Source: Pecten maximus
Taxonomy: Eukaryota
NCBI RefSeq assembly: GCF_902652985.1
Contig: NC_047016.1
Coordinates: 18,414,001 to 18,478,000 of the forward strand
Direction of reading: 5' to 3'
DNA: 64,000 nucleotides
The notes beneath the pieces are model-generated. The model worked only from the letters and a program-made list of their open reading frames with translations, ran no database searches and was not told the DNA's origin. The position numbers and the translations under genes were made by a program. Below are positions 681-59,861 of the stretch, one piece after another (position 1 is the first letter of the stretch; each line of letters begins with the position of its first letter).

Positions 681-3600
681 ATGGATATGAAAAAGGAACT
701 GCTAGCCGGCCTGATGTCGACGCCTAAATATATACCTGGTTGGTATATTTACGACAAGGAAGGATCGAGGCTGAACGACGTTTGTCTAAAGGAAAATAAA
801 AACTACTACTTCCATAGGTGTGAGCTGAATGTATTAGAAACCCATCTTTCGGTAAGTAATATTTATAAGGCGTCTAAAAAGAAAGGAATCCCTTCGATAT
901 TCATTTCATGCTATCGGTAGAGTGAGGATGTCGAAAATCTATTTATAGTAACAGTGACTTCAATTTCGACCCCTTTAGGTTGAAACCCCAAATTTACCCA
1001 AAACCTGATGGTCGTGAGTAAGTGTATGGAGTTCAAGGACTGTCGGAACATTAATGAAGTCGAGGACATCAAACATCTAGTTAAAGTAACAGTTACCTCA
1101 TTTTGTCCCAGGTTGTGAAAGTATAAGAGATGATGGGTTGTGAGAAAATCAGCAATAAAGTCCGTAGAAAGAAGACGTGGAAAATCTATTTATAACAACA
1201 GTGATATCATTTTTTGGTGACGGCAAAACCCTAAAAGAATTCATGGCTATGAGCAAGTGTATGAAGTTTCGGGACAATTGCAATACTAGTAAAGTCGGTA
1301 GAGACAGGACCTCGAAAACCTATTTTTAGTAACAGTGACCTAATATTTGAGTGTGCGCAGGTGGTTGAAACGCAAGTAAGTGTGTGGAGCTTTAGGATAT
1401 TTGGGTCATTAATGAAGTCGGTAGTGCAAGGACGTCATTTGATATCAGTTTTAATAGTAGTTTGATTATTTCATGGTCAAATTTTCGCTACCACGTTCTG
1501 GCTCACGAAAGAAGTGTCATCCCTGTAAAAACAACCCTCTATCCGGTACGTAGGGACTACCCATCAACCAAGTCATCTCTATAGAATATGAATACCTTCA
1601 CATTAATCGCGCTCCAGGATTATAGATTTTAGGGAGGAGTTACAGATAATGACAAACCACATGGGGTAACGTCAATATTAAAGAGATCGTTAAATATATC
1701 ACAGAGCAGGAATGTCTGCTAAGTCTATTATCATCCAACTAAACATTGAGGGTAGCTCACTTCAAAGTCTATTAACATCCAACTAAACATTGAGGGTAGC
1801 TCACTTCAAAGTATATTATCATCCAACTAAACATTGAGGGTAGCTCACTTCAAAGTCTATTATCATCCAACTAAACATTGAGGGTAGCTCACTTCAAAGT
1901 CTATTATCATCCAACTAAACATTGAGGGTAGCTCACTTCAAAGTATATTATCATCCAACTAAACATTGAGGGTAGCTCACTTCAAAGTCTATTAACATCC
2001 AACTAAACATTGAGGGTAGCTCACTTCAAAGTCTATTATCATCCAACTAAACATTGAGGGTAGCTCACTTCAAAGTCTATTAACATCCAACTAAACATTG
2101 AGGGTAGCTCACTTCAAAGTCTATTAACATCCAACTAAACATTGAGGGTAGCTCACATCAAAGTCTATTAACATCCAACTAAACATTGAGGGTAGCTAAC
2201 TTCAAAGTCTATCAACATCCAACTAAACATTGAGGGTAGCTCACTTCAAAGTCTATTAACATCCAACTAAACATTGAGGGTAGCTCACTTCAAAGTCTAT
2301 TAACATCCAACTAAACATTGAGGGTAGCTCACATCAAAGTCTATTAACATCCAACTAAACATTGAGGGTAGCTAACTTCAAAGTCTATCAACATCCAACT
2401 AAACATTGAGGGTAGCTCACTTCAAAGTCTATTAAGATCCAACTAAATATTGAGGGTAGCTCACTTCAAAGTCTATTATCATCCAACTAAACATTGAGGG
2501 TAGCTCACTTCAAAGTCTATTATCATCCAACTAAACATTGAAGGTAGCTCACTTCAAAGTCTGTCAACATCCAACTAAACATTGAGGGTAGCTCACTTCA
2601 AAGTCTGTTAACATCCAACTAAACATTGAGGGTAGCTCACTTCAAAGTCTATTAACATCCAACTAAACATTGAGGGTAGCTCACTTCAAAGTCTATCAAC
2701 ATCCAACTAAACATTGAAGGTAGCTCACTTCAAAGTCTGATAACATCCAACTAAACATTGAGGGTAGCTCACTTCAAAGTCTATTAACATCCAACTAAAC
2801 ATTGAGGGTAGCTCACTTCAAAGTCTATCAACATCCAACTAAACATTGAGGGTAGCTCACTTCAAAGTCTGTTAACATCCAACTAAACATTGAGGGCAGC
2901 TCACTTCAAAGTCTATTATCATCCAACTAAACATGGAAGGTAGCTCACTTCAAAGTCTATTATCATCCAACTAAACATTGAGGGTAGCTCACTTCAAAGT
3001 ATATTAACATCCAACTAAACATTGAGGGTAGCTCACTTCAAAGTCTGTTAACATCCAACTAAACATTGAGGGTAGCTCACTTCAAAGTCTATTAACATCC
3101 AACTAAACATTGAGGGCAGCTCACTTCAAAGTCTATTAACATCCAACTAAACATGGAAGGTAGCTCACTTCAAAGTCTATTATCATCCAACTAAACATTG
3201 AGGGTAGCTCACTTCAAAGTATATTATCATCCAACTAAACATTGAGGGTAGCTCACTTCAAAGTCTATTAACATCCAACTAAACATTGAGGGTAGCTCAT
3301 TTCAAAGTCTGTTAACATCCAACTAAACATTGAGGGTAGCTCACTTCAAAGTCTATTAACATCCAACTAAACATTGAGGGTAGCTCACTTCAAAGTCTGT
3401 TATCATCCAACTAAACATTGAGGGAAGCTCACTTCAAAGTCTGTTAACATCCAACTAAACATTGAGGGTAGCTCACTTCAAAGTCTATTAACATCCAACT
3501 AAACATTGAGGGTAGCTCACTTCAAAGTCTATTATCATCCAACTAAACATTGAGGGGAGCTCACTTCAAAGTCTATTAACATCCAACTAAACATTGAGGG

Positions 3601-6600
3601 TAGCTCACTTCAAAGTCTGTTAACATCCAACTAAACATTGAGGGTAGCTCACTTCAAAGTCTGTCAACATCCAACTAAACATTGAGTGTAGCTCACTTCA
3701 AAGTCTGTTAACATCCAACTAAACATTGAGGGTAGCTCACTTCAAAGTCTATTAACATCCAACTAAACATTGAGAGTAGCTCAACATAAATGAAATGAGA
3801 AAGCGTTTTGAATAGTTAAATAAAATAGATAAATAACCAAAAATTCTAAGAAAAACAATAATCCCAAAATATTTAAAAAAAAAAAAAAAAAAAAAAGATT
3901 CGCGACGTGTTCCACTTGTCGACCATGTTTCGGTATTTCGGTGTCCTTGGTCCGATTCGGTTTTATTCTTATTCTCGTCCCCCGTTTTTCCTTTATTAAG
4001 GTGTTTTCTGTCAATCCCTAGGGTGTGATTTCTTATTTCTTATTACTTGTTGACATTGAATTTGTTATCAATAAATTTGATCAACTTGACCTTGCGTAAA
4101 TAAAAATTAGTATGATGCAAGATCATCCCCTGCCTAGAAAATATGACGGAGAAATCACCAACTATTTTGATGTTCCTGAATGTCTTCTCGACAGAGCTTC
4201 GAGTTAGACAGTAAAGTTTGTAACATCTTCTCTGTCACACACTCCAGGCAGGGGTAGCTTATATCATACTAATTCTAGGACATGTTTCCTAATTTGCCGA
4301 AATAATATTTATATTTACTGACCCAAATGATGTTCATATTTTGGGCTAATCATGTCCCTGGGTACTAAATATATCGCTCGTTCTTACCTTCATTTATTTT
4401 ATTTTTGCAGTCTATGCTGACATTTGATACCGAGAACACCGTTCTAGTCGACATGGGGAGCGGGAACTGCCAAAAAACACGCTTATTTATTGATAATATA
4501 TTACAAAATCAAGACAAGCTGACTTTTTATCCCATTGATATTTCACATGGTATGTAGTCTGCTATACTCAGATATTGTTAAAAGTTTAAAGGAATATGTT
4601 ACAGGTATCAAGATCTCAGTTGAAGGCTGTGAAATCTGGTTACGGGCGAATCCCAGAGTATGATGTAACATAATATAGTGCAATTGGTTTTCTTTCGTAT
4701 GAATTTTTGCGCCTTTCCAACAAAATAACTCCATTTAAGAACGATGTTCACGAACTTCGGGGCCAATTTCAGACGCTTTCATTCTACCATCTCATTTGAA
4801 AATACATAACTGGACACAGCTTTGCGACACCCTAGCCGGTCAAATTATAATGACTAGTGGCAAACCATGCCTACTGTCTCTGAAATAAGATTTTCAGCAG
4901 AGAGCAGCAATTAACAGTTTCGGGTTACATTATGCATATCGGCCATGGGAGAGATCCCATGACACCCCTGATATGGACGAACGTTCATCTTTTGGCCAAT
5001 AGTGAGATGTAATCCATTATCGTCTTAAATTTTATAACTGTTTTTTAAAGTCTTATAGTAACACTTAGATACTAATGTTTTACAGGAAAATATATCATGG
5101 AAGTGTGGTGAACCACTGTTGTGTGTTATGTTACCTGTCGTTCCGGACTGTCCGTCTTCTACTTTGTTTATTAGTCTCGACGTCAGGTAGACGTTTGTAA
5201 GTAATATACACCTAGGAGGTTTAGAAGCGTTCTAAAGATCCTGATTTTATAATAGGTGGCGCTAGTTTCCCTTTCGCGAGAGTATAAAAGGCGGCGGTCG
5301 AAACTAGATATTGTTCACTTCTTCGTCTGACACGAACGAGATAAGGCCGGACAAAAAGGTATTAGTTAAGATATAGACGTGCCTGAACAAGGCTTCCCTA
5401 TATCAAAGTACTTATTGTGTATGTAATAACTTACGGTAGAGTACGGAGGCAGATGTGCCTGAGTAAGGCTTCCCTTCTCCGTGGGGACTCTAGTTAGTCT
5501 ATGTGATCGGTACATCACATACGTTGTTAGTAAGTGTATTAATATCAATAGCCTTGGGTCTGCTCGTGGTTTATAAGAAAGTGTCTGAGAGCCGCGAGTG
5601 TTGTACTGTACGTACATGCCTAACGTTAAATATATGCTAGGGAGTGCTCAGTAAGAAGTGAGTACTCGGTGAGTGCTCGGTAGAAGTGAGTGCTCGGTAG
5701 CAGTGAGTACTCAGTGAAGTGAGCGCTCGGTAAAAGTGAGCACTCAGTCAAAGTGAGTGCTCACTCGGTCAATGAGTGTTGAAACTCTCTTACCCTCATA
5801 TATAAAGTAATCATAGTTGTATAATGTGATATTGCCCGGAATAAACCCCAGATAGGGAAGATTCATTTTGGTCAGGGAGCACTCATTATTTCATGTAGAA
5901 TATCATTCTGTTCTGTTAATATAAATAACTCTCTGTTTAGGTGTATTTGTATTTCTACTGTAGGATTACTCAGAGGAACTGAGCAATCATTGTGTTATAT
6001 TTCAACTGTATAGCTAGTTGGTACTTGATGTATATTACATAAACACAGCCAGGTCAGCTGTATATTTCTGTATATTTTTGCACTGAGGACTCGAGTAAAA
6101 CTAATTATATGTTAGACAATATGGATCATCAGTAGTGACTGATACGGACCCTGTAAACGTCACAGATACAAGGTAACATTATGCTCACATTTAAAATCTA
6201 CATCCACGCTTCATTATTAATCAATGTTTTAAGGGTGGTTTCATCTAGGCGGTCGGAGATGAATTCCCCGATAGGACGTGAACAATTATTGGGGTCACTT
6301 GCCGGCCACGTAGGTTTTCCCCGGTACTACAATTTCCTCCCTCAGCTAGTAAGACGCCCCCCCCCCCCCCCCCCCTCCCCCCTCTCCCCGCGTGCATTCA
6401 TTCGGGCCAACAAGAGTGGTTATTATATATTTATATAGCTTGTTTCGCAATTACTGTAAAATAAATGCAAGCTATACAAATAGATGATTTTATGCTGCAG
6501 CACATTTTTTTTGGTAATTTTCTTTTCTTTAGGTTATGTTCCTTTTTGGAACCTCCATATCCCGTCGGGGGACAAGAGCCAACAGCTCTTTCTAGTCGCT

Positions 6601-9600
6601 GATTGGCTGGTTACTTTAGCTTTTCCCAGTAATTGGACAGCTGTTGATCAATGAGGATGGTTTATGATAAAGCTTTTGTTATGTTTCAATCATATATAAT
6701 TTGACCCATTGTTTCACTCATACAAAGTTGGACACATTCCGTAACAATGTAAATAATGCACACATTTCATTGCTCATTTGTTTCACTTAAAGTTTTCCCA
6801 TTCCACAATATCTACAAATTACTTCACAACAGCGACCCTACAAACAAAATAGTGGCTGCTTTCTACGCTGCTGAACAGTGATAGTCGGATGCAAGAATTT
6901 GTGCGATCGGCCGCATGTACATAAGAGCTAACAAGATGGCTTAACAGATTATCTGACTCCACTTTTTTAGGGAATATCCACGCATTGTCATATGTCACAG
7001 TATCTGTCATCTTCTATATATCTCAACAAAGTTCTAGTTTTTTACGTATATTGCTTTACAATTTATTTTATATGCATACCAATAAAAGTCATGTTTCCTG
7101 ATACATTGCTTTCACCTGTATGCTTTGGCCTGCTTGAGCCGGCCTCAGCTTTGCAACTAACATTTTAGTTTATAACATTTGATTTAGTATCTTACTTTTT
7201 CATGTATATCAATATAAGTTATGTTCAGTTCACATCTGTTGATAACATTTGGGTTAGTATTTTAGTTTTTTTTATGTATACATTTTCTGTCGTAAAAAAA
7301 TGTTCCGTTTCATAATCGTAATGGCACTTGTCTCCATATCTACTTCGAATTCTTGCCCTCCAAAGATGTGCTGTCGAAATAGATTTATGTGTTATGACCG
7401 TCACATTTCACAAGCTTTTATATGCTGATTCTAAAGAATGAATTCGAATTTTTGCGTCGTAAAGACGTACACAGGCACTTACCTTATACATGTTTAATTG
7501 ACCTACTTGAGCCGTTCAGTTCTTCGTCATCAATTTTATCTCTTTAACAAGGCTTGTTTGCTATGTGGCGTATGTTGAATGCCCACCTAAGGGTGTAAAT
7601 TGTCATATGTATTGTTGTAAAATTATTTTGAGAATTTGTATTTTGTTCTAATACTGATGTTGAGGTAGCCATCTTACGATGAGGTTTTCAAAATATTTTT
7701 GATGATAATGATTATTATGTGTCTATAATAAATTGTCCTCTTGTATAATTCAATCATTGGTTTTAATTTAATGTGGAGCATACATAAATAGGTTTATTAT
7801 TCAATATGTACATGTATGTATCTGGTAATCTACATTATAACTTCCAAACTACTCGGTTTTGGTACTGATGTCATGCGTTTATTTGAAGACAGTTTTTGTT
7901 TCCATTTCACAGAGACTTTGTTGTTATACAAATACAATGAGACTTGATATGGCTTATTGATCTGATTATATTACAAACCGTTCCTAAATACCACCCAGAT
8001 ATAACACAAATCTGCCTATAAAGCCATTTGTTTAAGCTCCCAAGACAACAAACTTCATGAACATTTATTAAATGGTCATATTTCTGCTCTCTTGGTTAAT
8101 GTCATGGCACGGGACAGTTTGATTGCCTGACATATTAATCTGTTATAGAGTTTTTATCGGACACCTGCAGACAACTTTCTGAAGAATATGCTGAGAAACT
8201 CGAAATCAATCCTATCGCTACTGATTATGAAACTGGCATCAGTGAAATCAGGTAGGCACGGTGTGTCTTTTTTTGTTTAATTGTGTGTTAATAAAAATGT
8301 AGGATATTTGTCTTGACTATATTACACAAGGCAGTACTAGTTTTGGTCCTGATACTTACGGGCTATCAGTGTCTAAAACTGTACACTGATTTTTCTCACA
8401 TTGAAGACGGCATTGTACTAAGTCCACGAACTCTTTCTTGTTTTCATTTTAAGCATTAGTCTTTACAAAATATGAAACCAATTCCATTCCCCTGAATGCT
8501 ACCACACATGTTGTTTAATATGAGATTAAAATGAGTTCTAGGGGGATAACTTGGGTCTAATGAATCCCCCAACATGCACGTGATACAGAAATGGTATTCA
8601 AATCTTTAGATATTACGTATATTTTCAGGTATTGTGAAACTAATAATACACATGTATGTGATACTTTATTGATTTTACAACGATTGCTAAACTAGTTGAC
8701 GTGATCAGGCAGATGACCCCATATCCGATCGGTGATTCGAACCCTGGTCGTCTAGGTGAAGGGCAAGTTTGTTGCCGCTGTTGAACCCGGCCGCACAGTT
8801 TATCGTGTTTGATGGTCATTTTGTCAGATACATAATTTCTGAGTTTTACTAACTGGTCCCTTCAAACATTAATTCGTTTAACTTTTTCAGGACTTTTATC
8901 TACCCAAAATTGATTCTATGGTTTGGTAGTATCCAGATACTTGAACCTGACGACCAAATACGAATACTACAGCTGTTGAGGTCAGCGATGACAGGTTCGT
9001 ATTAAGTTCTCAGGTTTTATAAAACTTGGGCTGTATATACTAATATAAACATCGAATTGTTACAAGATGCTAGTATACGGTCGATATGAATACCACTTGG
9101 GTGATAAATACATGTAGAATGTCGCCCTTTTACTTACAGTTTGACTTATTTTGCTGAACCTAAAACAAAAACGGCGCTTAAAATTGCCTCTAACTAAATA
9201 CTGAATACCGGCAAAAATAATGTACAATTGAAGTTCATCTTGTCAACAAAAGCATAAACTAGTTTCAACACCGATTTGATTTTTTTTAGAATCTATTGTA
9301 CAAAAGGAATATTTTGTCGGATCTTTAGTTTCGTTTTCCTATTAATTTTCATTATTTGGAATTAGAGCCGTTATGGCGGATTGATATTTGATTTTGAAAC
9401 GGCAGGGTTCAAGTGGATGCATCGAGAAACTATAAGATTTCCATGGAAATGGGTATGATTTCATTGAATACCCACCAGGGAATTCTAAATGAAAGTCGTT
9501 CATAGAAAGAAGACAACGTTTCTAAGAAATGGAAAATTGACAATCATGATAATAAAAGCATGACGCTTATCATACAGCTTAGTAGTAAGCTGTTCCTGCT

Positions 9601-12600
9601 GGATACATTGTTGGGAATGGTCAAATAAGTTGGCTGATACGTTGTTGGGAATGGTCAAGGAAGATGGCTGATACGTTGTTGGGAATGGTCAAGGAAGATG
9701 GCTGGTACGTTGTTAGGAATGGTCAAGGATGATGGCTGATGCTTGTTAGTAATGGTCAAGGATGATGGCTGATACGTTGTTGGGAATGGTCAAGGAAGAT
9801 GGCTGATACGTTGTTAGGAATGGTCAAGGAAGATGGCTGATGCTTGTTAGTAATGGTCAAGGAAGATGACTGATGCTGAAGAATCTGTAGTGTCCTTCTG
9901 ATCTGTATATTTGATCTTCATTGTCAATGATGTTTAGTATTTAAAGATAAGACATTGTCAGTATATCAAGGAAACATCAGGGAACTGCAATGTGTCTGTT
10001 TCCTGTTCTTATAAGGTCTTCATTGATATCCGTCCCGCATTAAATACATCAACTCGACAAAGAGAGCTAGGGAAAAGTTTGTGAGTATGCCCCAGTCTAT
10101 TGGAAATCGTGTCACTAAACTGAACAAATATGTTGTCGCACAGAATTTCAATCTTTCTCACGATTTCATCATCTGAATATTTCCGTGTGAGTTATATAAA
10201 CACCGGATATGTTATAACATGGTTGTTGTCGGTGTGAAAATACAAAATGTAGTAATGGGAAGTGATTACAAATATAAACAGAAAACACTTAATTTGTAAC
10301 CACAAAATAGTGGTTCAACCTTACTATTGTTTTGTTGTTATGCTGCCTGTATAACTTAAACAACAAATACAATACTCACAAATGTATCATACAGTGTTTA
10401 TACTTTGTGAACCAGTATGTATTTGTGAAAAAAATAAAAATAAAAAAAGTTAATATTCAGTTGTGTGTATATAAAAAGAGGAAATGATTTCATTTTAAAT
10501 AACTTCATTTTAGATTCAACAAGGGATACTTTTTTCAGCTCTTGCTTTGCTTCCAGTAATAGAAAACATATTTAAAATAATGGTTTTAATCATTTGAACT
10601 GCATTTGAATTACAACAATGGATGTGAAAGTCACATGGATATGTATAAATGAGATGAATAAATGACATATGAGCTAAAATAACAGCTTTATAACGTTCAA
10701 ATAATATAAACATCATGAAACGTGCGTCTCTACAATATCTAAATAGTTCTTGTAAACTGTGAATACATTTGTAATTTATAATCCTCGATATTCATCGACA
10801 TTTTATGCATTTTGTTTTCTAATTAATTACATAAATGTACATTTATGACTATTTTACAGAACGCTGCTGTTTGATCTTCAGTGTCGATATAACACAAAAC
10901 AGAGAAGCGGTCATAAAGGCATACAGTGGCGTTCATGGTGAGAATCTGAATGTGTCTACATCGAAAAAACATATTTGTGCTTGATCATTTAATTGCAATG
11001 TAATGAACACAATTTGATGGTTGAAATGTTCGGCCCCCTATGCCGCCAATTGCTCTTGTCTCTAACAGCTCATTTGACAGATTCTCTCTCCATTTGACTA
11101 AAATTCAAGAGAAGTCCCAAGTCCAAAAAATGACAATCTTAAAAATTCTACATCTCTGGCAAAAGAGAAATGATCGCTTGAAAACAAGACTGTTGTATCT
11201 TTCCATACAATACCAAAAGTTATATAAATTAAGCTATTGCCAACCCCTAAATGTTTAGCTTCTCGTTTTATCTTTTAAAGTAAATACATAATTAGTTGGT
11301 CCCGAAAAACTATCATGTTCCATCTCTATAATTGGTATGTAACTTTCAGTCTTACACACGATCACTTCATGGTGGACGCAAGTTATTATTTTCATGTATA
11401 TTTTTCAAAAGAAATTAATAATGAGATATATTTTTATATCATCAGAACCATTTTTATGCATTTCCTAGACAAGTAGTGTATATGCTAACTAAATGTACCA
11501 TTCCACAGTTTATATTTAATAATCATTACTGAGCAGGACATGGGAGATCTAATCACTCTTTTAAATAAAAATAAATCCCCTAGACCGGGTGAAATATTCC
11601 CAAAATTTATCATATATAAATGTGTTATTTACCCTTTCTACCTACCTATTTATAAAGCAATTGAAACAGGTAGTATACCAGATAGATAGAAAATGGCTAA
11701 TGTAAGTAGCCTATATCAGGAATATGGGCAATATGGTGACATGTCTAATAATCGAACAATATCAGTTCCTTCCTGTTTCAGTTAAACAATGGAAACGACA
11801 GTTTTTAAGTGTAAGGAACACGATATCATACCAAAACACCAATCTGGATTCATACCTGATGACTCCAATATCAATTTTCTCTCATCCATTATCATACAAT
11901 AGCTAATAACTTTGACTCTCAGAAAGAAGTAAGAATCATCTTCTGTGATATAAGTATGGCGTTTGATCGGGTTTGCCATTTTGGACTATTGAACAAGTTT
12001 CAATGTTATGGTATTGCTGGATATTTGCTTAACTGGTTTAAATGTTATCTATCTAATAGGAAGCAAAGAGACGTCACAGAAGGATAGCTTTGCTCATTCC
12101 AAAATGTTTATTCCCTCATGGGTCTGTACTAGGTTCTTTTCAATATCCTTATTTATAAATGATTTACCTAATACTCTAAGCACACAACTCTGTATGCAGT
12201 CATAGATGATAACAATGATTCTATAGCGGATACCTTAAACATTGATTTTGAAAACATCAAATCATGGGCTGATAAGTGGGATGTTAAATTGAACTCAAAA
12301 AAACAAAATCTGTTCTTTTCCCAAGGGAAAAACACCAGTTATCCCTCATTTATCTTTGTAGACAACGGTCTTTTAACCCCTCCTTTATTTAGATCAGAAA
12401 ATTATTTTAACAGTTTTTACTCAACAATACTACGTGAATTTAATTCTTTTGACTCTGAAATGGTAAACGCATCATCTTTGAGTATATTTAAAAACAAACT
12501 GATTTCTCCCTCTAAACTAAATCAGGTAATTGTTAAAACTACTTATGTACATATAAAAATAAAGGAAGGAAAGCAAATATCATACTTTGTCAATCTCAAA

Positions 12601-15600
12601 ACAATTCATGCAGTTTAAATTTTGACAGATATAAAGCCAACCTGATTGATTCACCATTATACAAATGTAACAGAAGAAAACTTCATATTACTATTTTGAA
12701 TGTTATTTATATGAACAAAAAGTCAGGAATTAGGGAATAAAATAAATAATTTGCAACACTTTACTCTGAAAGTGCTGACTCATGGAAATTACGAGCTACT
12801 TGATGATTTTAATATTTACATTCTGGAATATTTTCAAGAGTTTATTTAAGATACTAGATGTTTTGATTTAACAATATTTTGTGAAACATTCCTGGACCTT
12901 TTATATTTTAAATGCCATTTTGTTATTTAAAGATATTGTACTAACGACCTTTTTCTTAGATTAGTTAATAGATTAGCTAATTTATGTATTTCTAGATTTA
13001 ATTTATACACTTTTTTTTATTCATTTCTACATGAAAATATCCACTGATAATTTTTCTAATTTGTTAATGTACATTATAATAATTATGAAAGCTTTAAGCA
13101 TAGTGTGGGGGCATCCGTCCTGAATCTAGCACACCTGGGTGGCAGGCTAGAGGAAGAGATAATTGACACTTATGCTAGAAACCTTCATGTTGATGGATTC
13201 AAGACTTGATGTCATTCCAACACCTCAACACCAGCTACATGTAATATCTCTTTGACATCTTAATGATATATATACATAATATCTACTTTTGGATATTTCA
13301 ATGAAGTTATTATCTCCCTTTTACCAGTAACAGTTTATCAGATTGACAAATCTATAGCATATATGTACCTACTTATCTGCTTCGATCTGTTCTAATAAAA
13401 GGGACTATATGGTTAGAAAACACTATGAGAAATGGATATAAAACGTTATATTTTCTATGAGTATGTTACAAAACTAACACTTTCTCTTAATTACAAAAAT
13501 TAAAAGTCACTGCAACCATTTACGATATATATCTAAAAAATAAAAAAGGTAAACATTTCGGTCTCGAACTAATTCATAAATTACCGCTCGTAGCCTGAAA
13601 ATGCGCATGCGCATAAACCGAGAAAAAAGCAAAATGGCGGACGCAAACCAGAAAAAACGACGAGGTCCTAAAAGTTACTTGACGGAAAGTGCAAGAAAAC
13701 GAAGGAAAAAAGAATCAGAACAGAGAAGAGGAGAGGCGAGAATCTACATAAGCAAAGAGATAGATAGATGGCGAAAGGTAAAGGAAGATCTCGCACTGGA
13801 GACTGATTCTAAATTGGCCACTTTCCAATTCAGCGCCACCTGGCGGATCATAATCCAAGATGGCGGCGTATGGTGTGTCCGTGTCACAGCACATGTTTTT
13901 AGTGTTTTATCAGCGCTACGCGTCAAATTAGACTTTTTCCAGAAAATCTTCGTGCTTAAATGCGTATATAGGTAAGTAAGTCTTTATTTTGGAATGATTT
14001 TATAAGGAAATAAGGCGATATAAGACCGATATACACTTGTTCAAATACCCCAGGTGAGAAACCCTGCAGAATGCTATGTAACTCATTTACACAGGTGTAG
14101 CATTAAAAATCGGTCATTGTATGATTCACGATTCATTTATTAGTTCTTGATTTGTATAGATCGAATAGAATCAGTCACTGCTTATGAAATGACGGCATCA
14201 TAACGATGATAGCGAAATAAATAACGATATATTTATAAATACTATTTGCACCAGGTAACATTACAGGTAATTTTGAAAGGTGTTTTGAATGCCGCCATTT
14301 AGCCTATACTATTTTTAGAGCAGGTGAAAAGTCACGTGATCTATCTAGGATAGTGATCTTCCATTGATTCATTGTATTTTCTATTTCATGTCACCTGACA
14401 TTCGTATTTAAATAAATATTATAAAAAGTACTGGTATAGGCCTAGTGGTTTAAAAACATATTATGAAAACAAACTTTGATTTATATTTTTCAGATACAAA
14501 ATGCCTCATCACTGCTGTGTGCCACATTGTACAAATAATTCCAAGACAAAAGATGGTTACTCTTTTCATACATTCCCTAAAGACCCTTCAGTGGCAAAAA
14601 AGTGGGTGATTGCTATACGCAGAGATCAAGGTGCAGATTTTGATATCAACAAAGAGACAAGAGTATGCTCCGTTCACTTTAACGCAGACTCTTACCATCC
14701 TACCACTGCTATTCATGTTCGAAAACGTTTGCGAGGGACTGCTGTACCATCAGTATTTCAATGGACTGTACAGAAACCCGTCAGAAGGAAACTCAGCCTT
14801 CTCATGAAAAGTCCAAATTGTGGAAATGTAGAATCCAACAATACAAGTTTCCCAGAAAAACATGTTTTGGAAAGCTGTAATAATGATTGTGATGAGCCTT
14901 TACTTGTAGACCAGCCTTTTAGTAGTGAGGATAGTTTAACAAATGTGGATTGGGCTGAATCTCCAGACAAGAGTAAATTAAAAGAAACCAACAGTGTTCT
15001 ACTTCACATTAGGAACAAAGAGAAGTTTTCAATTCTACGGTTTTGTAATTCCGATTCTGATATCAGATATTACACAGGATTTTCATCATACCTAGCCTTA
15101 CACTGTTTCTTCACATTCTTACAACCGGCTTGTAGCTTTTTGTACTATGTAGGGACAGACAACACATCTGAAGGGACACCTTACATATTTCTCAACAAAC
15201 GTGGAAAGTCCAGATCCTTGTCGCCTATGGAAGAGTTATTTGTAACTCTTGTTCGTCTTCGGAAAGGTTTACCAGAAAAACATTTAGGTGACCTGTATAA
15301 CCTTTCTGAGGGACATGTGTCAAAAATACTCAACACTTGGATTGCTTTTCTTGACAACAGACTTTCTTCGCTACCAATTTGGCCACAAAGAGATCATGTG
15401 AATAACACCATGCCAGCAATTTTCAAGACATATTTTTCCTCTACTCGAACCATAATTGACTGCACAGAAATATTCATAGAACACCCATCTGCCTCGGAGT
15501 GTCAGCGGGAGACATTTTCCTCGTACAAACATCACAACACTGCAAAGGGTCTCATTGCCATCGCACCAAGTGGCCAAATCACATTTATTTCTCCGCTCTA

Positions 15601-26700: not shown

Positions 26701-26744
<44 letters not shown>

Positions 26745-30163: not shown

Positions 30164-30967
30164 ACATTGATATAATGAATCTCATCGTGGCAATTATATA
30201 TATATATGTGTGTGTGTATGACAAAGCTTTCCTGATCATGGATCAGTATACCAATGTAGATGTGTTCAATCTAGAATAAAGAGAGGTATGAGATAAATCA
30301 TCGGTGATATCAACACAGCATAACGAATATATAACTATTGATAAAATATCTAAATAATTATCATAAAAAAAGGTGAGTAAATATCTTAACACTGATTAAT
30401 TTTGGGAATCAACTTATTGTACATTCATGTAATTTATCTAGATCACGTTTTTATGCAAAACAGTGTCATTATCCAATAAAGTAAATTTTCTCCGCCTTTT
30501 ATAACTTCATAACTTAGGTGTACACATCGATTATAATGTTGCATATATACTTCCCTGGCTATGTTCGGGGTTGATCACGATGAAGTTGTTTTTATGGTTT
30601 GTTTTATAAAAAACCGAAAGTTTATTAAAAACGAAGTCTCCCTAACCAAAGTCTAATGCATGCCAAATTTGGAAAAAATAACCTTACAGAAAAAAGGAGG
30701 AGGATTTGAATATATCTTTTTTTCAATTGCCCCACTATTTGACCCTTCCCTTTCTCCCAATTCGCCCATACCCACCAAATATATGAGGCCTAGTCCTCTT
30801 CACTCGAGTATGCAACCAACTTAATATGCCTCCATCCCAATAGTAGAAGGTTTGAATTGATAGCTTTATCTCATCAGACTCTTTATACAATGTTGAGTTC
30901 CCTTCACCCAAGGATGCAGTAAACCAACTTTGGCAAAGAAGAAGATATATTTACATTAACCACTGTA

Positions 30968-36628: not shown

Positions 36629-36639
36629 ATGACGACCAG
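36629..36639 (+). CDS. Possible first micro-exon (MTT-R) of EgtD-like copy 2
   Basis: ATGACGACCAG|GTAAGT strong donor in phase 2, compatible with the acceptor at 39898 (ag|a ATG GAT); TATA-like gtatatatat about 45 bp upstream. The copy 1 acceptor (cag|t gga atg) is also phase 2. Confidence 0.4.
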
Positions 36640-42600: not shown

Positions 42601-45205
42601 AGAATCGGACTGCGATGTTTACGAAATTATTTTGATTGGACGTGGGTGAATTTGAAGTACTATGAGCTAATCATGAATATATGCAAATTCAGGCATCATT
42701 CTGGAGCGAATTTAACATTTTTACCCGTATTTTTGTTGTTAAATTCCGTTGATATTTTCAGAATCGCCTCCATGATGCCTAGGTTATGTCGATCTAGCAG
42801 AAACGTTCTATTCACTTCCTCTAAAGCCCTGATAATCTCACATGTATGTTATTTCTGAACTGTTCCTGTAAATTAAACGTATTGGATTTTTCCCACATTG
42901 ACCTGATGTATGTACTGTACAGTATATGTTATGCTCACAGATCGTGCAGAAGCGAGCGAGCGGCTTCTGACTATATATATATATATATATATTTCATACG
43001 CATAGAATGATGTTAATCCGGTCGAATTTATGGACAAATAAAACTGATTTAATTTGGTAATTTCATTGAGTCTAATTTAAGTAGAAATTGAAATATCACT
43101 TATTAAAGTAAGGACTAAGGGAATCTTCCATATTATATTGATTTTCAGTATATCCATGAAAAATATTTACAGATCAATATTTTGACAAACCTGTACGAAA
43201 AAGATCCTCTGGCCATATCAAAGTATCATAAAGAATGTGGTTTGCCTAATACAATTTCAGATTGCCATTGGTGTGTATCAATTTTGAATTACATTTGGTT
43301 AGGCACTATCTGACCATAGATATTGGTGGCCATGTATCAACCTACCGGATAGAATGTGAAAGGGTATCCTCCTCATACTCGGCGAAACTGTTTAGCCCGT
43401 TGATACACGATGTGTTCCACGTGTCTCGGTATCTCGGTGTTCCCTGGTCCGATTCGGGTTACACATACACATTGATAACTAGACATTATGTTTAACACCA
43501 AATTTAGGATATTTAACAAAAATATATTTGAATATTGTTAAGTGTTGCCATTCAATTTATTATTGATGTATTTAAACAATTGGACCTTGCGTATATGAAC
43601 TCAGTATACGGTGAGATCTCCTCTGCCTAGAGGATATGACGTGATTTCTCCAACTTTTGGGATATTTCTGATTATATTCACCTCGGCAGAGCCTCGAGTT
43701 GGACAGTTCAGTACATTATATCTAGGGTTTGAAATTTCTCTGTCATACCCTCAAGGTAGAGGAAACTTATATTTTCATACTAATTCAAAGTCAGGTTCTA
43801 AGGTTTTATAATGTCATTGTGCAATACATTGTAAGAGTATTAAGCTAGTCCTTATTAAAAACTTCTGATTTGTTTTCCAGTCTATGCTGACGTTTGATAC
43901 CGAAAAGACCGATCTTGTCGACATGGGAAGCGGGAACTGCCAAAAAACACGTTTATTTATTGATAATATATTACAAAATCACGACAAGCTGACTTTTTAT
44001 CCCGTTGATATCTCACATGGTATGTAGTCTCTTTCTTTTCTGGTTATTCTCTAATATTTTTATATTACATGAATTCGATTAATCAAAGTGCGCCAGCCCC
44101 TGATAAACGCATGTTTTGTAGTGTCATTCATGAAATGGTATATATATTTGTCAGAAGAAAACTATATATATATATAAATACCGCGAAAGATAAGTTATAA
44201 GACATCCGTGTGTCTATAGTGAGTAACCACGACACAAACTAAAAACAATCACCAGTTTAAAAGAATGTGCTACCTTATCAATATCTTAGTTGGAGGCAGT
44301 TAAAATTTGATTTCGGGCGAATCCCAGAGTAGAGATATAATACAATATCGACCAAAAAGTGCAATTGGTTTGGTTCAGTTTGGTTTTGTGCCTTTTAAAC
44401 TAAATGCGGCCATTTAAGGACGGTGTCAACGAATCCGCTATCAAACGCTTTCATGGTGAAATCATATTGAAAAGACATACATGGACATAGCTGTGAAACA
44501 CCCGAGTCATTCAAATTATTTTTACAACGGGGGAATCAGTCCATAGGACCAGCTATCAAATATGATGTAGAGTATCAATTTCGGTTTTTCTTGGCTAGGG
44601 ATCCCACGACATCCTTTGTAGGTATGAACGCTCATCTTTTGATCAATAGTGAGATATAACTCATATTCATTTTAGATGTTGTTTTAAAGTAACTTATAGA
44701 TACTGACGTTTTCAGGAAAATACATTTTGGACACCAGGTCACATAATTGTCTCATTTTATAATCTATCAGCCTGCTTCAATCATGAACTAATATTTTAAG
44801 GGCTGAAAACGGTAGAACAGAGGTAAAACCCGTGTATTTCATTTAGATGGTCGGGGGTGAAATGCCCCTATATGCCGTGAAAAGGTATTGGGGTCAACTG
44901 GCCGACCGCGTAAGTTTTCTGTGGGTACTCCAGTCTCCTTCCACAGAAAGATTTCTCGTTCGTTTCCATCCGAGCCAACAGGGGAGATTATGTAATGCTA
45001 ATATAACCTCGTTTCGCAATTGTTGTAAAATAAATAGGTCTGTTATTATAGTAATCAATATTTGATTGAGTCAGGTAACATATTTATTTATTTATTTATT
45101 TTTTGTATCTACAATATTTATTTAATGGTCATATTTATCTTCTCTCTCAGGTCAATGGCATAGTACAGGGCAGGAAATATGGCATTACACTTAATACATT
45201 AATCT

Positions 45206-48030: not shown

Positions 48031-48068
<38 letters not shown>

Positions 48069-49099
48069 AGCATATACGTGATACAGAAATGATATTCAAA
48101 CCTTTGGATATTATGTATATCTCCAGGTATTGTAACACTGTTAATGTATGTGGTGTTACGTTATTGATATAATAACAATTGTGCTCATGAAATAGTTACC
48201 TAATAATGCTATAGGTCAAGTTGTCTTTAGACATTAGGTAAACAATCTACACAAGAACCACCTTAAATAATCTAATATTTTACAATGACATGCTGATATC
48301 TTTTAATTGTCTTTATATCTCTGAAAGGGTTTGTGCGACATGTTCTCGGACACATATGAAACTTGTATATGCATACAAGGGGGAGTCTTGGGTTCGGTAC
48401 TCAACCCGGCCGTTGGCCGCAAGGCTGGCCTTCGAATTTTGGGTGTAAACTGTCATATTCTGTACAAAGTGTATATTCATGTAATAGATGGACACTAATA
48501 AACTTGCTTATAATTAGAAGTAGAATCTACTTATGCTATAACCTGACCCCAAGTAAATCGTGCTTCATTTTTTCTTAGAGGTTCATGAAACGAGAGTGCC
48601 ATACACCTATTTTCTACTTTAAGCTCAGTGATACTGTCAAGCTTTTAATTCATGAAACTTTTTTTCAGGGCATGTATTCACCCAAAATTGATTCTATGGT
48701 TTGGTAGTATCCAGAGTCTTGAACCTGACGACCAAATACGAAAACTACAGCTGTTGAGATCTAGCGATGACAGGTTCGTCCGACGTTGACATGTTTTATT
48801 TCATGTTTTATACAACTTTGATCGTATATATATAATTCATGTAAAATGCCGCTCATTCAATAACACTTTGGCTTATTTTACTGAACCTGACACAAAAAGA
48901 GCGCTTAACAGTGTCGCAGACATCAGTAAGTTTAACTCCAAGAACAGCCGATATATCCGGCAAAATGATATAGTTCCTCTTGTCGTCGTAAAACAAAACA
49001 AGTGCAATCAATGATTGCGAAAACTCAACGGCGGCAGCAATTACACTATGCATTCATTTTTTATGTATGTATAAGCATGTCATTTTAAAATTGTATGTC

Positions 49100-49663
49100 A
49101 CATAATATCGCTCCTAGACCTCTAATGGAGGTATAAACCATATAAGAAGGGTGTGGACTTACAACCTTTCCAAAACTAACCCCCAAAATCTTTTAAAGTG
49201 GGTTTTTGTGTCAAAAAAGTAAGTACACTAAATGGTAAAATGCGAAAAAATCACATTTTTTGTCTGCATGATTTTGCCATAACATCACTCATAGACCTCT
49301 AATGAATGTATAAACCAGTTAAGAAGGGCATGAGGTGTATACTTTTGGACTTGCAAACTTTCCAAAAACTGAACCTAAAAACTTTAAAGTGGGTTTTGGT
49401 GCCAAATAAGTTAGATCCACAAATGATAAAATGCGAAAAAATCACAATTTTTTCCGCATGATTTTGCCATAACGTCACTCCTAGACCGCTAATGAATGTA
49501 TAAACCAAATTAGAAGGGCATGAGGTGTATACTTTTGGACTTACAAGCTTTCCAAAAAGTTACTCCAAAAACTTTAAAGTTTTGGGGGTGGGACGCCGAC
49601 GCCGACGCGGACGCCGGGGTGACAGTATTAGCTCTCGGTTACTCGTAACCGGTGAGCTAAAAA
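49100..49663 (-). mobile_element. Helentron/HINE-like non-autonomous element with internal tandem repeats of about 180-190 bp
   Basis: About 2.5 units starting ctcctagacctctaatg (near 49111, 49288, 49478), gacgcc microsatellite, terminal hairpin agctc..ggttac..gtaacc..gagct followed by an A-run. Confidence 0.55.
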
Positions 49664-52600
49664 GAAAGCATAAAGTAGATTCAACACAAATCAGGTTATT
49701 TGAATCTATTGACAAAAGCGTTGTTTTAACTGATCTTATATAGCTTCATTTTTTCCTTTAGTAGTTTTAATTGTTCACAGTCACAGTCGTAATCGCGCAT
49801 TAATTTGATTTAGAAGCAATACGACGAGGTTTAAGATATTGGCATCGAGAAAGTAAATGTTTCTATGGAAATGGTTATGATTACATAGACTATTCAAAAT
49901 TCTAAATGAAAGTCGTTCTTAAGTAGGAGAAACAATTTCTAAAATGGAAATGAACAATTATGAAATAGAAAGTTTGACGCTAATCACATAGCTTAGTTGT
50001 AAGCTGTTACTTCTGGATACGTTAATAGTCAAGGAATATTGCTGACGTTGAAGAGTCCGTAGTATCTATGATTTCAGGTTCTTTATGATATTTCTGATCT
50101 ACATGTTCAATGTTTTAAGTATAAAAATATATTGTACCTTCGATATATCTAAAAGGAAAAACGGGTCTGAAAGTAGTCCTTGTAAGACTGCAAAACCAAA
50201 TATGTAAATGTATCTGTGTCAATATGCGTCGTCACTTTATGTATCTGATTTCTTATTAATTGGATTAATGTTCATTGATGGATGAATTTTATTTTACAGA
50301 ACGCTGCTGTTTGATCTTCAGTATCGACATAACACAGAACAGAGAAGAGGTCATGAAGGCATACAATGACGTTCATGGTGAGAATCTGAATATGTGTACA
50401 TAACAAACATATTTCTGCTCGATTATTTAATTCTGATAAAATAAATGAGATAATAATAATATCTGATTGTTGAAATTGTTAGGTCTTCTATTTTATTGCT
50501 TCAGTCTCTAACAGCTCATTCGACAAATTGAACATCTGAATAAAATTTAACAAAATATCATATTCCCTAGAATGCAAAGCTTAGAGAGCTACATCCGTGA
50601 CAATAGAGTAATTATGATCGATATTCTATACATATACCAATTAAAATAAAAGTTATATAACTTAAGGTTATTCCAACCTTTAAACGATTTAGCTTCTCTA
50701 CAAAAATGTATTTATTTTTCGTAATCAACCCTGTCAAACCGGCCGTCACGTTTTCTCAACAAGCAACAATCTAAACAAACATTTCGAAGACCTTCACAAT
50801 TACTGATTATTCAAGGTAACGACCATGTCGTTGATTGAAATGCCCACATACGTAATTTACCTGTAGTTTTAATTGTCATATCAAGGTAGTAACGACTATT
50901 CACCAATCCGAAAGGATAAACGTCACATATAATTAATACTTTTCAAATATATTCTTTGAAAAGAAAGCACACGCGTGCCTTTCAAGCACCAAGTTGGTAC
51001 AGACCTGAGCATGCCTAGATGTTGATACTGATGATGACCCAGAATATTTAAACAGTTTTTAAGGTTACATGTTCATATTGAGGCAGTGATAGAAGCTGAG
51101 CTGACTTATTTTGGTGACTAAAGAATCGACTGGGTCAGCGACTAATAAGATGGTAAATCCTTGTAGAATTCCGATTCAAATTCCGACATAGCCGAGATGT
51201 GTTCTTGCAGCAGTTGAAATTTGTTATTCTCGTTTTTAGTAAATTACGATATAAGTATTAACGATTTGTTTAGGACTTAATAACGGCGACAGAAAAAAAT
51301 ATCATACCTGAAAAAAATTGCTTCTAAGAAAGCAATGACGGACATTTTTGGACAATAGTTTTTATTTTCATTTTTAATGCACTTGAAATAAAACTTCCAT
51401 ATCATGAAACGGTCGACTTTTCCCCTGTTGAAGTAAGCAATTGAATAGCTAAGGTGTACAGTTTCTTTGTTTTACATCTAAGTCAAAATCCATTTCACAG
51501 ATGTTGATTATTACCAATCTCTATAAACCGGATACCAGCGTAAACCGGCCAAATATTCTGATTTCGGTGACATCCGGTTACGATAGGTTATACAGTATTT
51601 CTATACAGTCAGTACCAATTCTTAGCATTTCGAAGATAAGAAGTGTGTACGCCGTGGGTGATTTTTTATCTTTGACATTTTTCATGGTCACGTGCGAACT
51701 ATTGAACACTAGCTATGACTTTCCGGTATTTAGTCCTACCCTTTCAAGCGCCCAAGTCACTCAGATGTCAATACTGTCAGACGACAGTCATGGTGACTTC
51801 TAGGCCTACATGGAAGTCGAGAATAAGTTGAGATATTGAATGTATTGTTTTCAGGCTTCAAATGCAAATGTAAACACCATACTTGTTTTGAATGTCCTCA
51901 TTATATTGGATACATACATTAACAGTAAATCACCTCAAAAATGTAATGCACCTAGTTGATGTAACAATATGTAAAGAAGAAGATCCGGACTAGATAACAA
52001 TATGTAAACATAATAGAAATACTGATTTAGCAAATATACGGGGTAGTTTTAATATTTGTATTAGTGATAGGACTCTTGTTATTGAAAGATGCATCAACAA
52101 TTGTAAAACATATACCCTCCACATATTTAATCACTTATACTCAACTGATCACCTCCAAAAGAATTCCATAACACATTACTTTAGTGAAAACTTAACATAT
52201 TGAGGGGTTAAGGAGGTATCGCATAACGTGTTTGCTGTCGTTCCAGAAAAAGAAAAAACAGAAAACTTGTATTAAAAAAGCAGTGACTATATATAAAATA
52301 TGAGGAGTATTAAAAAATGCAATGTAAATAGATAGCCTTTCAAAATGAAAGAATGGAAAAGTCGAGATGGCTAAACTGGAATGATTTTGCATATTTTTGG
52401 ATATTTTGAAAATAAAAACTGTTAGTTTAACATGTATATGAAAATGCAATAATGAATGTAATGTAATGAATGAAATGTGTCTTAAGAATTAAAAACAACA
52501 ATTGTAACACATTGTTTACAAAATCGTTGACCGAAAGAAAACACCACCGTGGAACATCTAAGACAAAATTTATTTATTTTTTTAAATGTATGTGTTTGAG

Positions 52601-55600
52601 TTAGCTATGGTCTAAATATAACCTGCACGTGATGTGAGTGTAGTTGAATAAAGACTTGATTTGTTTTATACAATATTAGCTACATTAATTGATATAATTA
52701 AAAATCATTTTTTAAGCATTTGTGATAATAATTTTAAAATGATAACTATGCAACAGTTAATAAATTTTCATCTCCCCAGCAACACAGTGTCAAATTCAAA
52801 TCCTATCCAAATAATCTATGATCTAGTGACCTTTCAGTTCTAGATTGATTGATTGATGGGGCTTAACGTCCTTGTTCCGGTTATAACCGAGCCTAGGACA
52901 CATTTATTTCAGTTCCAGATTCCCCGATGCTTTATTTTTAAATGGTCTAGTTTTGTAATGGCATAGTGTATTCCCACTAATTTCACTTGTTTAAACTGAC
53001 CAAATTAAAAATATCATGGTAATAACAATAGTTTTAGAAGTCATTAAAAGTGTACTTAACAGGAAGGAGGACATGACTCTAGACACTTATGAATCATAAT
53101 ATAAACAAATTCACATATATAATGATTGTTAACTTTATTTTGGAAAATAGCCAGGCAGATGTTTATGAACTCCATTTGGCGACTGATACGTGAGGAGAAT
53201 TGTACAATTAAGCCAGAGTATTTTGACTTAGAGGTTGACTTTATTAAAGAGGATTCTCCCGACAGAAATTAGTTCTGTACAGGTTCTACGTCAGAGCTAA
53301 GCAAGCAAACGCCTTTATATTGCGTAAGTAAGCTTATCTTATAGGTCACAGGGTGATGTTTAATGGTTCTGACACTATTACGATTATCAAATGTTCTTCT
53401 TTGATCATATGTGTTTCTATATTGTATAATGTGTGTGAAGTTCATTGAGTTCTTAACCTTAAACAAGCAAGCACTGTGACATGACATCTAAATAAATTAC
53501 AGAAGTCGAAAAAATAAAGAGGAGAAATGTTAGAGATATAAACAAAAATATACAATATCGCCTTTGGTAGCTGGAAAGGAAAATATACAATCCTTATTGG
53601 ATCTTGTACATTGTATTTCCTGTTGATGTTTATGATGTTATCAAAATCTAATACTTGATCGTTTGTAAGACAGCTCGAGGACTAAACAATCATAAGATTC
53701 TGTTAATTATTCACAGCTACCTTGGGTATCACTATGGACCTTACAGAAGGAGAACCCTTGTATCTACACGGAGGTCCCGGTATCAGCCACAAGTACAATC
53801 TCCAACAGGTACAGACGCTGGTACAGAGGGCGGGGCTTCATTTGGTGGACACGTGGGTCGATGGCGAGGAGCATGTGATGTTCTGTAAATGTGAAGTGAT
53901 ATAATACACAATACCATTCATGATGTCAATCTCATCATGGCGGATATATAATGTATAACAAAGAATCCGTCGGTCTAAACCTAATAATAAAGTGTGACTT
54001 TGGTGGTTTAATTGATTGTGTCGACTGCAAAGCATGGGGGACATTTAGGGATCACTTTGTCCATTGTTAAGTGTTGTCGTCGTCGCCGTCGTCTGTCACA
54101 TTTGAGTTATCCGGACTTTTTACATTATCATTTTTCACATCAATTTGTAACTTGGTATGTGGCTTTATCATTATAAATTAAAATTCAAGTTTGAACCCTG
54201 TGTCAATATTCTATTTTTATCTGGAGTTATAGCCCTTTGTATATTGGACATTCTTGTTATTAAATAAGTAGTCCATGTTTCTATTGTTACATACAATAGA
54301 CATGCGATGTCAATATCATTTAAAAGAAGACGACCTTGTAAACACCACATACTTGATCAGTTTGGCACGATCTTGGGATGATTATTTTTTTTGTACCTTT
54401 ATTTAGTTGTTTATAATTTCAAAATAAGTAAGACTGTGAATAGAAAATACGCGAAAATGGACATATAATGTAAATGCGAGTGAGTTGCAACTACAGTAGA
54501 TAACATGCTTACGAGATTAACGGAATGTATTCAAGATGTTTGAGTGATTTCAGGATCTATATTATTTATGCAACTATCTACCAGATTGGCTTAATTTCTC
54601 CATTAAATACAGAATAAATCTACATAGATTGCATGAAATGTATTATATATGAATCGATTGCGTGTAATGAATAATGTATTTGTGAAAGGTTGTAATGGTG
54701 TGTTGAGAAATTATGGTAATTCTTATCTATCATATGAAATGAGTCACCTCTTTCTATAGTCACCAAAACGTGATTGATATTAAGACACTCTGCGCCTTTC
54801 TAGAACGAATGATAACAGGGATACATGCATTTTTAAGTCTGAAATGTCGGATGAAATTTTATATACATCTAAACAAAATACATCCGGATGGTCATATTCC
54901 CAAGGTCACTACACTTGTAGTTTAAACCTTCATACTTATCTAGGTCAACGGCTTGTGCTAGGTATACCTTAAGTAATAAAGGTGGGTTCAACATTTGGCC
55001 CCCGCTTCGACTTCTTTAATTTTTGCCATACATTTGTATGAAGATACATGAAAATAAACGATAACAATATAAATGAGTTGTCATGTCACCATTGATAGTC
55101 ATACTGGACCTGAGTGACGGTGGTGCCCTAACAAAATGATTCTTTAAAACCACAAGCGGACGTCTGTGATGGTACCTATATTTATTGTACTCGCGTCTCT
55201 TTTGCGTTTTGAGCGAGGCTCGACTTTTTGAATGAATACAGTCGTGCTCCAAAATGATGTTACTAGATTTCTATGCTGGTTTAAATGAATAAATGCTGAA
55301 ATATCTTTGAGGAACAAAACTGCAATCATATTTGATTTGCATGTTGATCACATGGATTCCGCTGTTTTCGCGAAAACATCGTCCGTTTTCATACATGTGC
55401 ATTTGAACAACCTCCCCTGATTTCATATATAAAACAATTTCACAATTTAATTCAAACCGATGTTATTATTAAAACACTATTGCATCTTTATTGAAATTTC
55501 TAACTTTAGAAATACAAAACTTAGAATTCAAGAACGTGAGAATAGTGGAGGCAGATAACGGAGTATATAGCCTACCACATCCTTTCAGTTTGAGTTACGT

Positions 55601-59600: not shown

Positions 59601-59861
59601 CATGTTATTTTAGAAGAACCATTAGCTGGGTATCGGCAGGTTAAGTAAAATATGTGCCATGCATAAAATATCTCATCTCGCTCTATAGTAATGTACTATC
59701 AACTACACTGTACTTATCTTTTTAATTGACAGTATTCTGAACTGCCATTATATATTATAGGTTTCTGTGTAGAGTTTGATGCAATGAGTTTTTCAATGCA
59801 GGGTAAAACATTAAAGAAGCTCGCTGATATTCAAACCATAGAAAAGCAACCTACTGGCGAT

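Follow-up and report, generated by a model that had tools for sequence, protein, structure and literature searches.

Tandem EgtD-family methyltransferase genes in the scallop Pecten maximus: an intact copy with an altered substrate site and a copy disrupted as assembled

What might genes of the EgtD family do in an animal? EgtD is the histidine N-alpha-trimethyltransferase of mycobacterial ergothioneine synthesis, and enzymes of its type are known from studies of bacteria and fungi, where they make hercynine, the precursor of ergothioneine, and aromatic amino-acid betaines; natural synthases of these betaines belong to the same family. The question is raised by a stretch of 64,000 nucleotides (nt) from the genome of the scallop Pecten maximus (contig C2, positions 18414001-18478000; hereafter the window), in which two neighbouring genes, called gene A and gene B below, belong to this family. 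Gene A has an open frame over its whole length, is spliced across an assembly gap, and keeps the family fold together with the S-adenosylmethionine (SAM) motifs and carboxylate-binding residues of EgtD, while residues specific for histidine are lost. On balance, we regard it as likely that gene A is a SAM-dependent N-methyltransferase of an amino acid other than histidine. Gene B yields no full-length protein as assembled.

The genome searched comprised 918 Mb in 3983 contigs, and the window sits within a 55.1-Mb chromosome scaffold. Its base composition is that of AT-rich animal DNA (GC content about 0.33), there is a single run of N (22114-22276), and NCBI predictions for Pecten maximus are identical to parts of the window proteins. 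A six-frame search of the genome with Methyltransf_33 (Pfam: PF10017) placed two pairs of exon 1 and exon 2 in the window, one in each gene. The gene models were obtained by spliced alignment with a 317-amino-acid (aa) protein of Ylistrum balloti, P0002, as a guide, which had been picked up with exon 1 alone. Both genes are tandem paralogues on the plus strand with a common seven-exon layout, as proposed in a first-pass annotation made from the DNA letters. The limits given there for the pair, 681 and 53904, are exact: the start codon of gene A (ATG) lies at 681 and the stop codon of gene B at 53902-53904. That annotation had also described two full-length paralogues of about 317 aa, which is true of gene A and not of gene B, where frameshifts and a TAG stop were found.

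Gene A (681-30163, plus strand) consists of seven exons, every intron is of the GT-AG type, and the joined exons (954 nt) form a single open frame of 317 codons. Its NCBI model XP_033759606 (P0089, 199 aa) matches exons 1-5 exactly and stops there; the 317-aa form was absent from the protein collections searched. The parts of gene A are the following:

681-851, plus strand: exon 1, with the ATG at 681, 57 codons in open frame and a GTAAGT donor at 852; PF10017 match of 37 bits, profile positions 1-52; equals P0089 residues 1-57
4411-4549, plus strand: exon 2, with the SAM-binding glycine-rich motif, a CAG acceptor and a GTATGT donor; PF10017 match of 34.7 bits, profile positions 60-98
8149-8251, plus strand: exon 3, from the spliced alignment to P0002; identical to P0089
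8891-8994, plus strand: exon 4, with the position equivalent to EgtD Asn166 (Ile here), from spliced alignment, translation and residue alignment
10860-10937, plus strand: exon 5, after which no further exon precedes the gap; its end is joined to exon 6 in an RNA contig
10938-28426, plus strand: intron 5 (17.5 kb), containing a transposon, a minisatellite, the N gap and a minus-strand gene with a P2RX7_C domain
22114-22276, no strand: assembly gap (163 N) within intron 5, beside a tandem array of 36-bp units; bridged in RNA by the joint of exons 5 and 6
28427-28597, plus strand: exon 6, seen in RNA contigs of runs X10 and X13, with a skip from 28597 to 29976 (GT..AG)
29976-30163, plus strand: exon 7 with the stop codon and the substrate loop HGGPGISHKY; PF10017 match of 23.6 bits, profile positions 266-302; RNA joint

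The RNA evidence comes from contigs of four RNA-like public runs, belonging to four studies, which were placed on window positions 24401-30400. A 390-nt contig of run X10 covers exon 6, skips from its end to the start of exon 7 and extends by another 169 letters upstream of 28426. Of these, the 30 next to the joint correspond to window positions 10907-10936, which is the end of exon 5 of gene A; the ends of exon 5 in gene A and gene B differ at four sites, and the contig matches gene A. The joint between exons 6 and 7 of gene A was also found in run X13. As the X10 contig links exon 5 to exons 6 and 7, the exons to either side of the gap belong to a single transcription unit and are spliced together in frame, so spliced transcripts, which the first-pass annotation had named as a check, are present. 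We considered a retrocopy as the origin of the joined RNA and rejected it, since the only copies of exon 7 in the genome above 55% identity are those of genes A and B.

On profile and model evidence, both genes are predicted to encode stand-alone Methyltransf_33 proteins with the EgtD fold, which agrees with the family assignment made from the letters. Exons 1, 2 and 7 of gene A each pass the PF10017 cut-off of 23 bits with the scores listed above, and exons 3, 4 and 6 had no PF10017 match when searched singly. Against our own profile of 22 bacterial family members the joined gene A protein scores 185 bits (positions 15-316 of 325); the score for the whole Pfam domain rests on single exons of gene A and on the orthologue P0002, which is 70% identical and reaches 186 bits over PF10017 positions 1-301 of 304. 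P0002 also matches EgtD of M. tuberculosis and M. smegmatis over the whole length, with E-values from 2.6e-23 (M. tuberculosis) to 6e-19. The AlphaFold model of P0002 has a predicted local distance difference test score (pLDDT) of 93.9. Compared with the PDB, the best 15 matches listed are all EgtD, with template modelling (TM) scores of 0.86-0.90 and a root-mean-square deviation of about 2 Å over the full length, and the first match other than EgtD has a TM score of 0.42. The fold and the mapping of residues from PDB structures were thus both obtained on this 70%-identical orthologue. Exons 6 and 7 of gene A had given only chance matches when compared singly with solved structures, for example to proline iminopeptidases sharing the string HGGPG; these were uninformative, so the residue mapping uses P0002. 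Another candidate, the best match of the exon 1 search (P0001), is a 3516-aa bacterial Ig-like protein without any match in the window and was discarded as spurious.

EgtD (PDB: 4pim, 4uy6, 7scf) and gene A have in common a stand-alone domain of about 320 aa, the same fold, a match over the whole length (through P0002) and the SAM motifs, although they share only about 23-26% identity. In gene A these motifs are a glycine-rich loop (Gly73, Gly75) and an acidic residue after strand 2 (Asp100), all in invariant alignment columns; the Asp-aromatic pair is Asp-Tyr in the gene A translation. Whereas EgtD has the neighbours EgtB, EgtC or EgtE, no such genes lie beside genes A and B, and the animal gene has six introns and belongs to a family of at least 34 loci. 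By language-model features, the second-nearest cluster is of the fungal 4-dimethylallyltryptophan N-methyltransferase type (0.96). These fungal enzymes (EasF type) resemble gene A in being eukaryotic, stand-alone members of the same Pfam family, but they are encoded in biosynthetic gene clusters, and none such was seen at the locus of genes A and B.

Does the substrate site tell what the enzyme acts on? In EgtD (M. tuberculosis numbering), Tyr56, Tyr206 and Ser284 hold the substrate carboxylate, Asn166 binds the alpha-amino group, Thr213 (via water) and Glu282 act at the imidazole side, and Tyr39 contacts the alpha-carbon (PMC8593015). We mapped these residues with a HMMER alignment of P0002 to EgtD and a MAFFT alignment of genes A and B with 20 relatives. 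Tyr39, Tyr56, Tyr206, Ser284 and Lys286 are retained in both genes. Among the other positions, Phe47 is replaced by Asn and Met252 by Val, Thr163 is deleted, and Thr213 is lost within a two-residue deletion (HMMER alignment of P0002). The Glu282 loop is longer by four residues and reads HGGPGIS in genes A and B, without an acidic residue; in most other scallop paralogues it has the form H-E-G-x-G-x-S. Since Tyr39 and the carboxylate-binding residues Tyr56, Tyr206 and Ser284 are retained, an amino acid appears a reasonable substrate for gene A, and since the histidine-specific residues are changed, this substrate is probably not plain histidine. A precedent is given by the PDB entry 4pip, the title of which describes an EgtD M252V,E282A variant bound to tryptophan. 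Gene A likewise combines Val for Met252 with Gly at the place that HMMER assigns to Glu282, and because this variant binds tryptophan, Val together with a small residue at these positions is a known route from histidine to another amino acid. The animal loop differs from that of the variant by its four additional residues, so that the equivalence is uncertain, and in gene A Asn166 is lost as well.

We propose that the gene A protein is a cytosolic, stand-alone, SAM-dependent methyltransferase of the EgtD family. With SAM as the donor, it would methylate the alpha-amino group of an acceptor other than plain histidine, either a free amino acid or something closely derived from one, and the product would be an N-methyl amino acid or a betaine. 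Catalytic activity, the amino nitrogen as acceptor and the identity of the substrate are what we infer for gene A here. Several observations weigh against this proposal. At the position of Asn166 gene A has Ile and gene B has Ser, against Asn in most other paralogues, and even inside the orthologous group of gene A this position varies between Asn, Ser, Cys and Ile. With a residue for amine binding lost and variable, the amine may be bound differently, or activity may be weak or lost. The N-methylation of an amino acid that the first-pass annotation had put forward is therefore upheld as far as the carboxylate binders go and weakened on the side of the alpha-amino group. Furthermore, the alignment of the Glu282 loop is ambiguous, as three alignments pair Glu282 with Gly, with His or with inserted residues. 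The joint of exons 5 and 6 is backed by one contig from one run and, given that the NCBI model ends after exon 5, a truncated 199-aa isoform of gene A may be made alongside the full-length form.

Gene B has the same layout, with an additional upstream exon in its NCBI model:

36575-36639, plus strand: alternative upstream coding exon (NCBI isoform X2), which splices to 39899; the sole donor and acceptor pair that gives the N-terminus of P0003
39900-40070, plus strand: exon 1, homologous to that of gene A; PF10017 exon match
43881-44019, plus strand: exon 2, 100% match to P0003
46526-46628, plus strand: exon 3, homologous to that of gene A
48669-48773, plus strand: exon 4, one base longer than in gene A, with an extra T at about 48762
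50300-50377, plus strand: exon 5, homologous to that of gene A
53151-53323, plus strand: exon 6, two bases longer than in gene A (insertions at about 53265 and 53289); read in the incoming frame, it meets a TAG at 53270-53272
53717-53904, plus strand: exon 7 with the stop codon, 92% identical to exon 7 of gene A; PF10017 match of 23.4 bits

As assembled, gene B has three single-base insertions relative to gene A, none of them within a homopolymer run, and the in-frame TAG comes after the first insertion of exon 6. With homologous splice sites the frame terminates in exon 5. The NCBI model P0003 (217 aa, isoform X2) uses the donor after 48773 and so runs out of frame until it stops in exon 5. 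If a weak alternative donor 11 nt further downstream (after 48784) were used instead, the frame of exon 4 would be restored; as the stop in exon 6 remains even then, gene B yields no full-length product as assembled. With the three extra bases removed, gene B is 91% identical to gene A in DNA and 86% in protein. On the same comparison the synonymous divergence (dS) is 0.21 and the ratio of non-synonymous to synonymous divergence (dN/dS) is 0.31, which suggests that most of the divergence between the two genes arose under purifying selection and that the damage to gene B, if real, is recent.

Gene B, or a near-identical allele of it, is transcribed and spliced: contigs of runs X6 and X7 that cover exon 7 have the gene B letters at 30028 and 30059 and are joined to the last 25 bases of exon 6 of gene B. 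These two runs look like one data set filed twice. A search for short protein fragments resembling exon 7 of gene B, meant as a check of the insertions in RNA, gave no candidates and is not counted as evidence. Gene B would accordingly be a tandem duplicate that was kept under purifying selection, may then have been disabled recently by the three insertions, as assembled, and is still transcribed.

How far is the family spread? In the genome we detected 54 PF10017 exon matches at 34 or more loci, two of which have two genes each, and counted 38 copies of the last exon, of which 33 are free of stop codons. The chief clusters lie on contig C13 (35.39-35.89 Mb) and on contig C11 (about 8.0, 13.3-13.6 and 15 Mb). 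Tandem arrays of Methyltransf_33 loci occur in both: at least 12 loci on C13 within 35.39-35.89 Mb and six on C11 within 7.97-8.19 Mb. Among the copies on small scaffolds, some are identical and probably represent haplotigs. Genes A and B have no close relative in the genome except each other, their exon 7 being at most 55% identical to every other copy, and the pair is the most divergent branch of the scallop family.

In a maximum-likelihood tree of bivalve, acorn-worm and bacterial sequences, gene A groups with proteins of Ylistrum, Mizuhopecten and Argopecten (support 100/99). The branch of genes A and B is conserved as an orthologous group over four scallop genera. All bivalve proteins form one clade (100/99) and the acorn-worm proteins a second one (100/98); both connect to the bacterial sequences at the same node, so that the tree speaks neither for nor against a single origin in animals. 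The named animal homologues among 30 clusters come only from bivalves (scallops, Mytilus, Dreissena, Sinanodonta) and acorn worms (Ptychodera, Saccoglossus, Glandiceps), and the family as a whole is mainly bacterial and fungal. No echinoderm, gastropod or cnidarian was among these 30 named clusters, which is weak evidence of absence since the underlying search used exon 1 only. All of the animal homologues bear the automatic NCBI name "histidine N-alpha-methyltransferase-like", including gene A (XP_033759606, exons 1-5) and gene B (P0003). Those from bivalves are found in Pecten, Argopecten, Mizuhopecten, Ylistrum, Mytilus, Dreissena and Sinanodonta; the members aligned share the longer substrate loop and, with the exception of a single protein from Dreissena, carry Gly two positions ahead of the retained Ser. 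The whole set consists of computed predictions with a name passed on by similarity, and the database models of both window genes are truncated.

These observations allow the rival readings to be weighed. An origin of the genes by bacterial contamination or faulty assembly is extremely improbable, even though the family is mainly bacterial and fungal: they have six GT-AG introns and spliced RNA contigs, lie inside the 55-Mb scaffold with animal transposons and an innexin gene nearby and with transposons in the introns, occur in 38 dispersed copies in the genome and have orthologues in independently assembled scallop genomes. The first-pass annotation had argued against contamination on similar grounds, and rightly so. 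A true histidine N-alpha-methyltransferase, by which bivalves would make their own hercynine or ergothioneine, is what the NCBI product name on all animal members says, and the nearest solved structures are all EgtD. The product name is, however, an automatic transfer by similarity, no sulfoxide synthase gene is adjacent, and in gene A Ile replaces Asn166, Val replaces Met252, Thr213 is deleted and acidic residues are missing from the Glu282 loop. We therefore regard a hercynine synthase as very unlikely, and the database name is probably wrong about the substrate. The position of Asn166, being unconstrained in the orthologous group, can also be read as a sign of decay, as can the three frameshifts of gene B, the truncation of both NCBI models (199 aa for A, 217 aa for B) and the 6.5-kb transposon that invaded intron 5 of gene A. 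In that case gene A would be weakened, non-enzymatic or directed at an acceptor other than a free amino acid, gene B would be a plain pseudogene, and the pair would be a decaying edge of the family. For this particular pair we take this reading as a serious rival, though an unlikely one, as gene A retains its 317-codon frame, splice sites, SAM motifs and carboxylate-binding residues, orthologues are retained in four scallop genera, the dN/dS between A and B is 0.31 and spliced RNA of exons 5, 6 and 7 is present.

A more specific proposal connects the genes to ovothiols: they would encode thiohistidine N-alpha methyltransferases making ovothiols B and C from ovothiol A or 5-thiohistidine. A scallop, Chlamys hastata, is the species in which ovothiol B was originally discovered by isolation (PMC9103826), in agreement with the first-pass annotation. 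That annotation also held the animal enzyme to be not established, which agrees with the literature, where the enzyme that adds the N-alpha methyl group of ovothiol B is described as "still uncharacterized" (PMC7551349) and the late steps to ovothiol derivatives in molluscs (cone snails) are given as unknown (PMC7954447). N-alpha methylation of a histidine-type amino acid would suit the chemistry of the family, and the smaller residues at the Met252 and Glu282 positions could accommodate a substituted imidazole. Methylation ahead of sulfur insertion would also be conceivable, since OvoA can take mono- and dimethyl-histidine (PMC8433421). On the other hand, the imidazole-contacting Thr213 and Glu282 are lost, at least 34 loci far exceed the needs of one pathway step, and no finding connects genes A and B with ovothiol or other thiohistidines. 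FGE-sulfatase exons, which are of the sulfoxide synthase type, were found at four loci of the genome (contigs C7, C16, C13 at 14.7 Mb, and C4), and the exon search found none near genes A and B or on their chromosome C2. A search for DinB_2 (Pfam: PF12867), meant to locate OvoA, had no match in the six-frame, exon-wise genome search and is uninformative. Every named animal homologue among the 30 clusters belongs to a bivalve or an acorn worm; sea urchins, for which ovothiol C is reported (PMC8433421), were not among the genomes searched. Taken together, we find a role in ovothiol synthesis distinctly unlikely. A role in osmolyte production alone, to which the betaines also considered in the first-pass annotation would point, is weakened by the presence of the family in the freshwater bivalves Dreissena and Sinanodonta. 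Given this occurrence and the number of loci, a single housekeeping role in ovothiol or osmolyte synthesis is not implied.

The preferred reading of gene A, an N-methyltransferase of a non-histidine amino acid, may also be extended to the family. Bivalves and acorn worms would then have their own, much-expanded EgtD-type branch, making N-methylated amino acids or betaines, perhaps the methyl groups of ovothiols B and C or aromatic betaines, in an undescribed pathway with substrate-specialised paralogues. We consider this extension possible but rather unlikely as a whole. If it is true, some marine invertebrates make N-methylated amino acids with genes of their own, and the family of genes A and B provides concrete candidates for the open N-alpha methylation step from ovothiol A to ovothiols B and C. 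The first-pass annotation had spoken of a candidate undescribed pathway. The genes themselves are already in the NCBI annotation with a name transferred by similarity, so they have been seen before but not characterised: they belong to a known superfamily, within which they make up a strikingly expanded animal branch whose substrate site has been rebuilt. In the literature searched we found no publication on an animal EgtD-family enzyme or on the animal proteins named by NCBI: papers on histidine N-alpha-methyltransferase dealt with a fungus and a Streptomyces, none of those on EgtD and invertebrates concerned an animal enzyme by its title, and word searches within reviews gave none either.

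Intron 5 of gene A contains two further elements around the gap:

13812-20275: transposon (6.5 kb) whose 175-bp terminal inverted repeats (13812-13986 and 20101-20275) match perfectly
21866-22113: minisatellite with a 36-bp unit, 6.6 copies and 91% matches, abutting the N gap

The gap is probably the unresolved remainder of this minisatellite array. A second minisatellite (24500-24843) has units of 29/58 bp with 81-92% matches. The transposon has an open reading frame (ORF) of 497 aa on the plus strand with THAP, HTH_Tnp_4 and DDE_Tnp_4 domains and one of 589 aa on the minus strand with PHD and YqaJ domains; its identical terminal repeats suggest that it entered the intron recently. The same intron holds a nested antisense gene (25241-27574, minus strand), spliced from the pieces 25241-25644, 25835-26082 and 26422-27574. 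Its transcript, with CT..AC joints, is present in all four RNA runs, and its final coding part (25385-25642) is a P2RX7_C domain (Pfam: PF20478, 77 bits). Within intron 6 of gene A, the summed contig depth of the RNA-like runs rises to about 20000 at 28601-29200, with many loose ends; this is a highly abundant repeat or repeat-derived transcript outside the gene proper.

Downstream of gene B, an ORF of 282 aa (59784-60632) has weak sub-threshold matches only. Just after it, on the plus strand, lies a 317-aa ORF (61107-62057) with a full innexin domain (Pfam: PF00876, 152 bits), in a GC-richer stretch (0.44).

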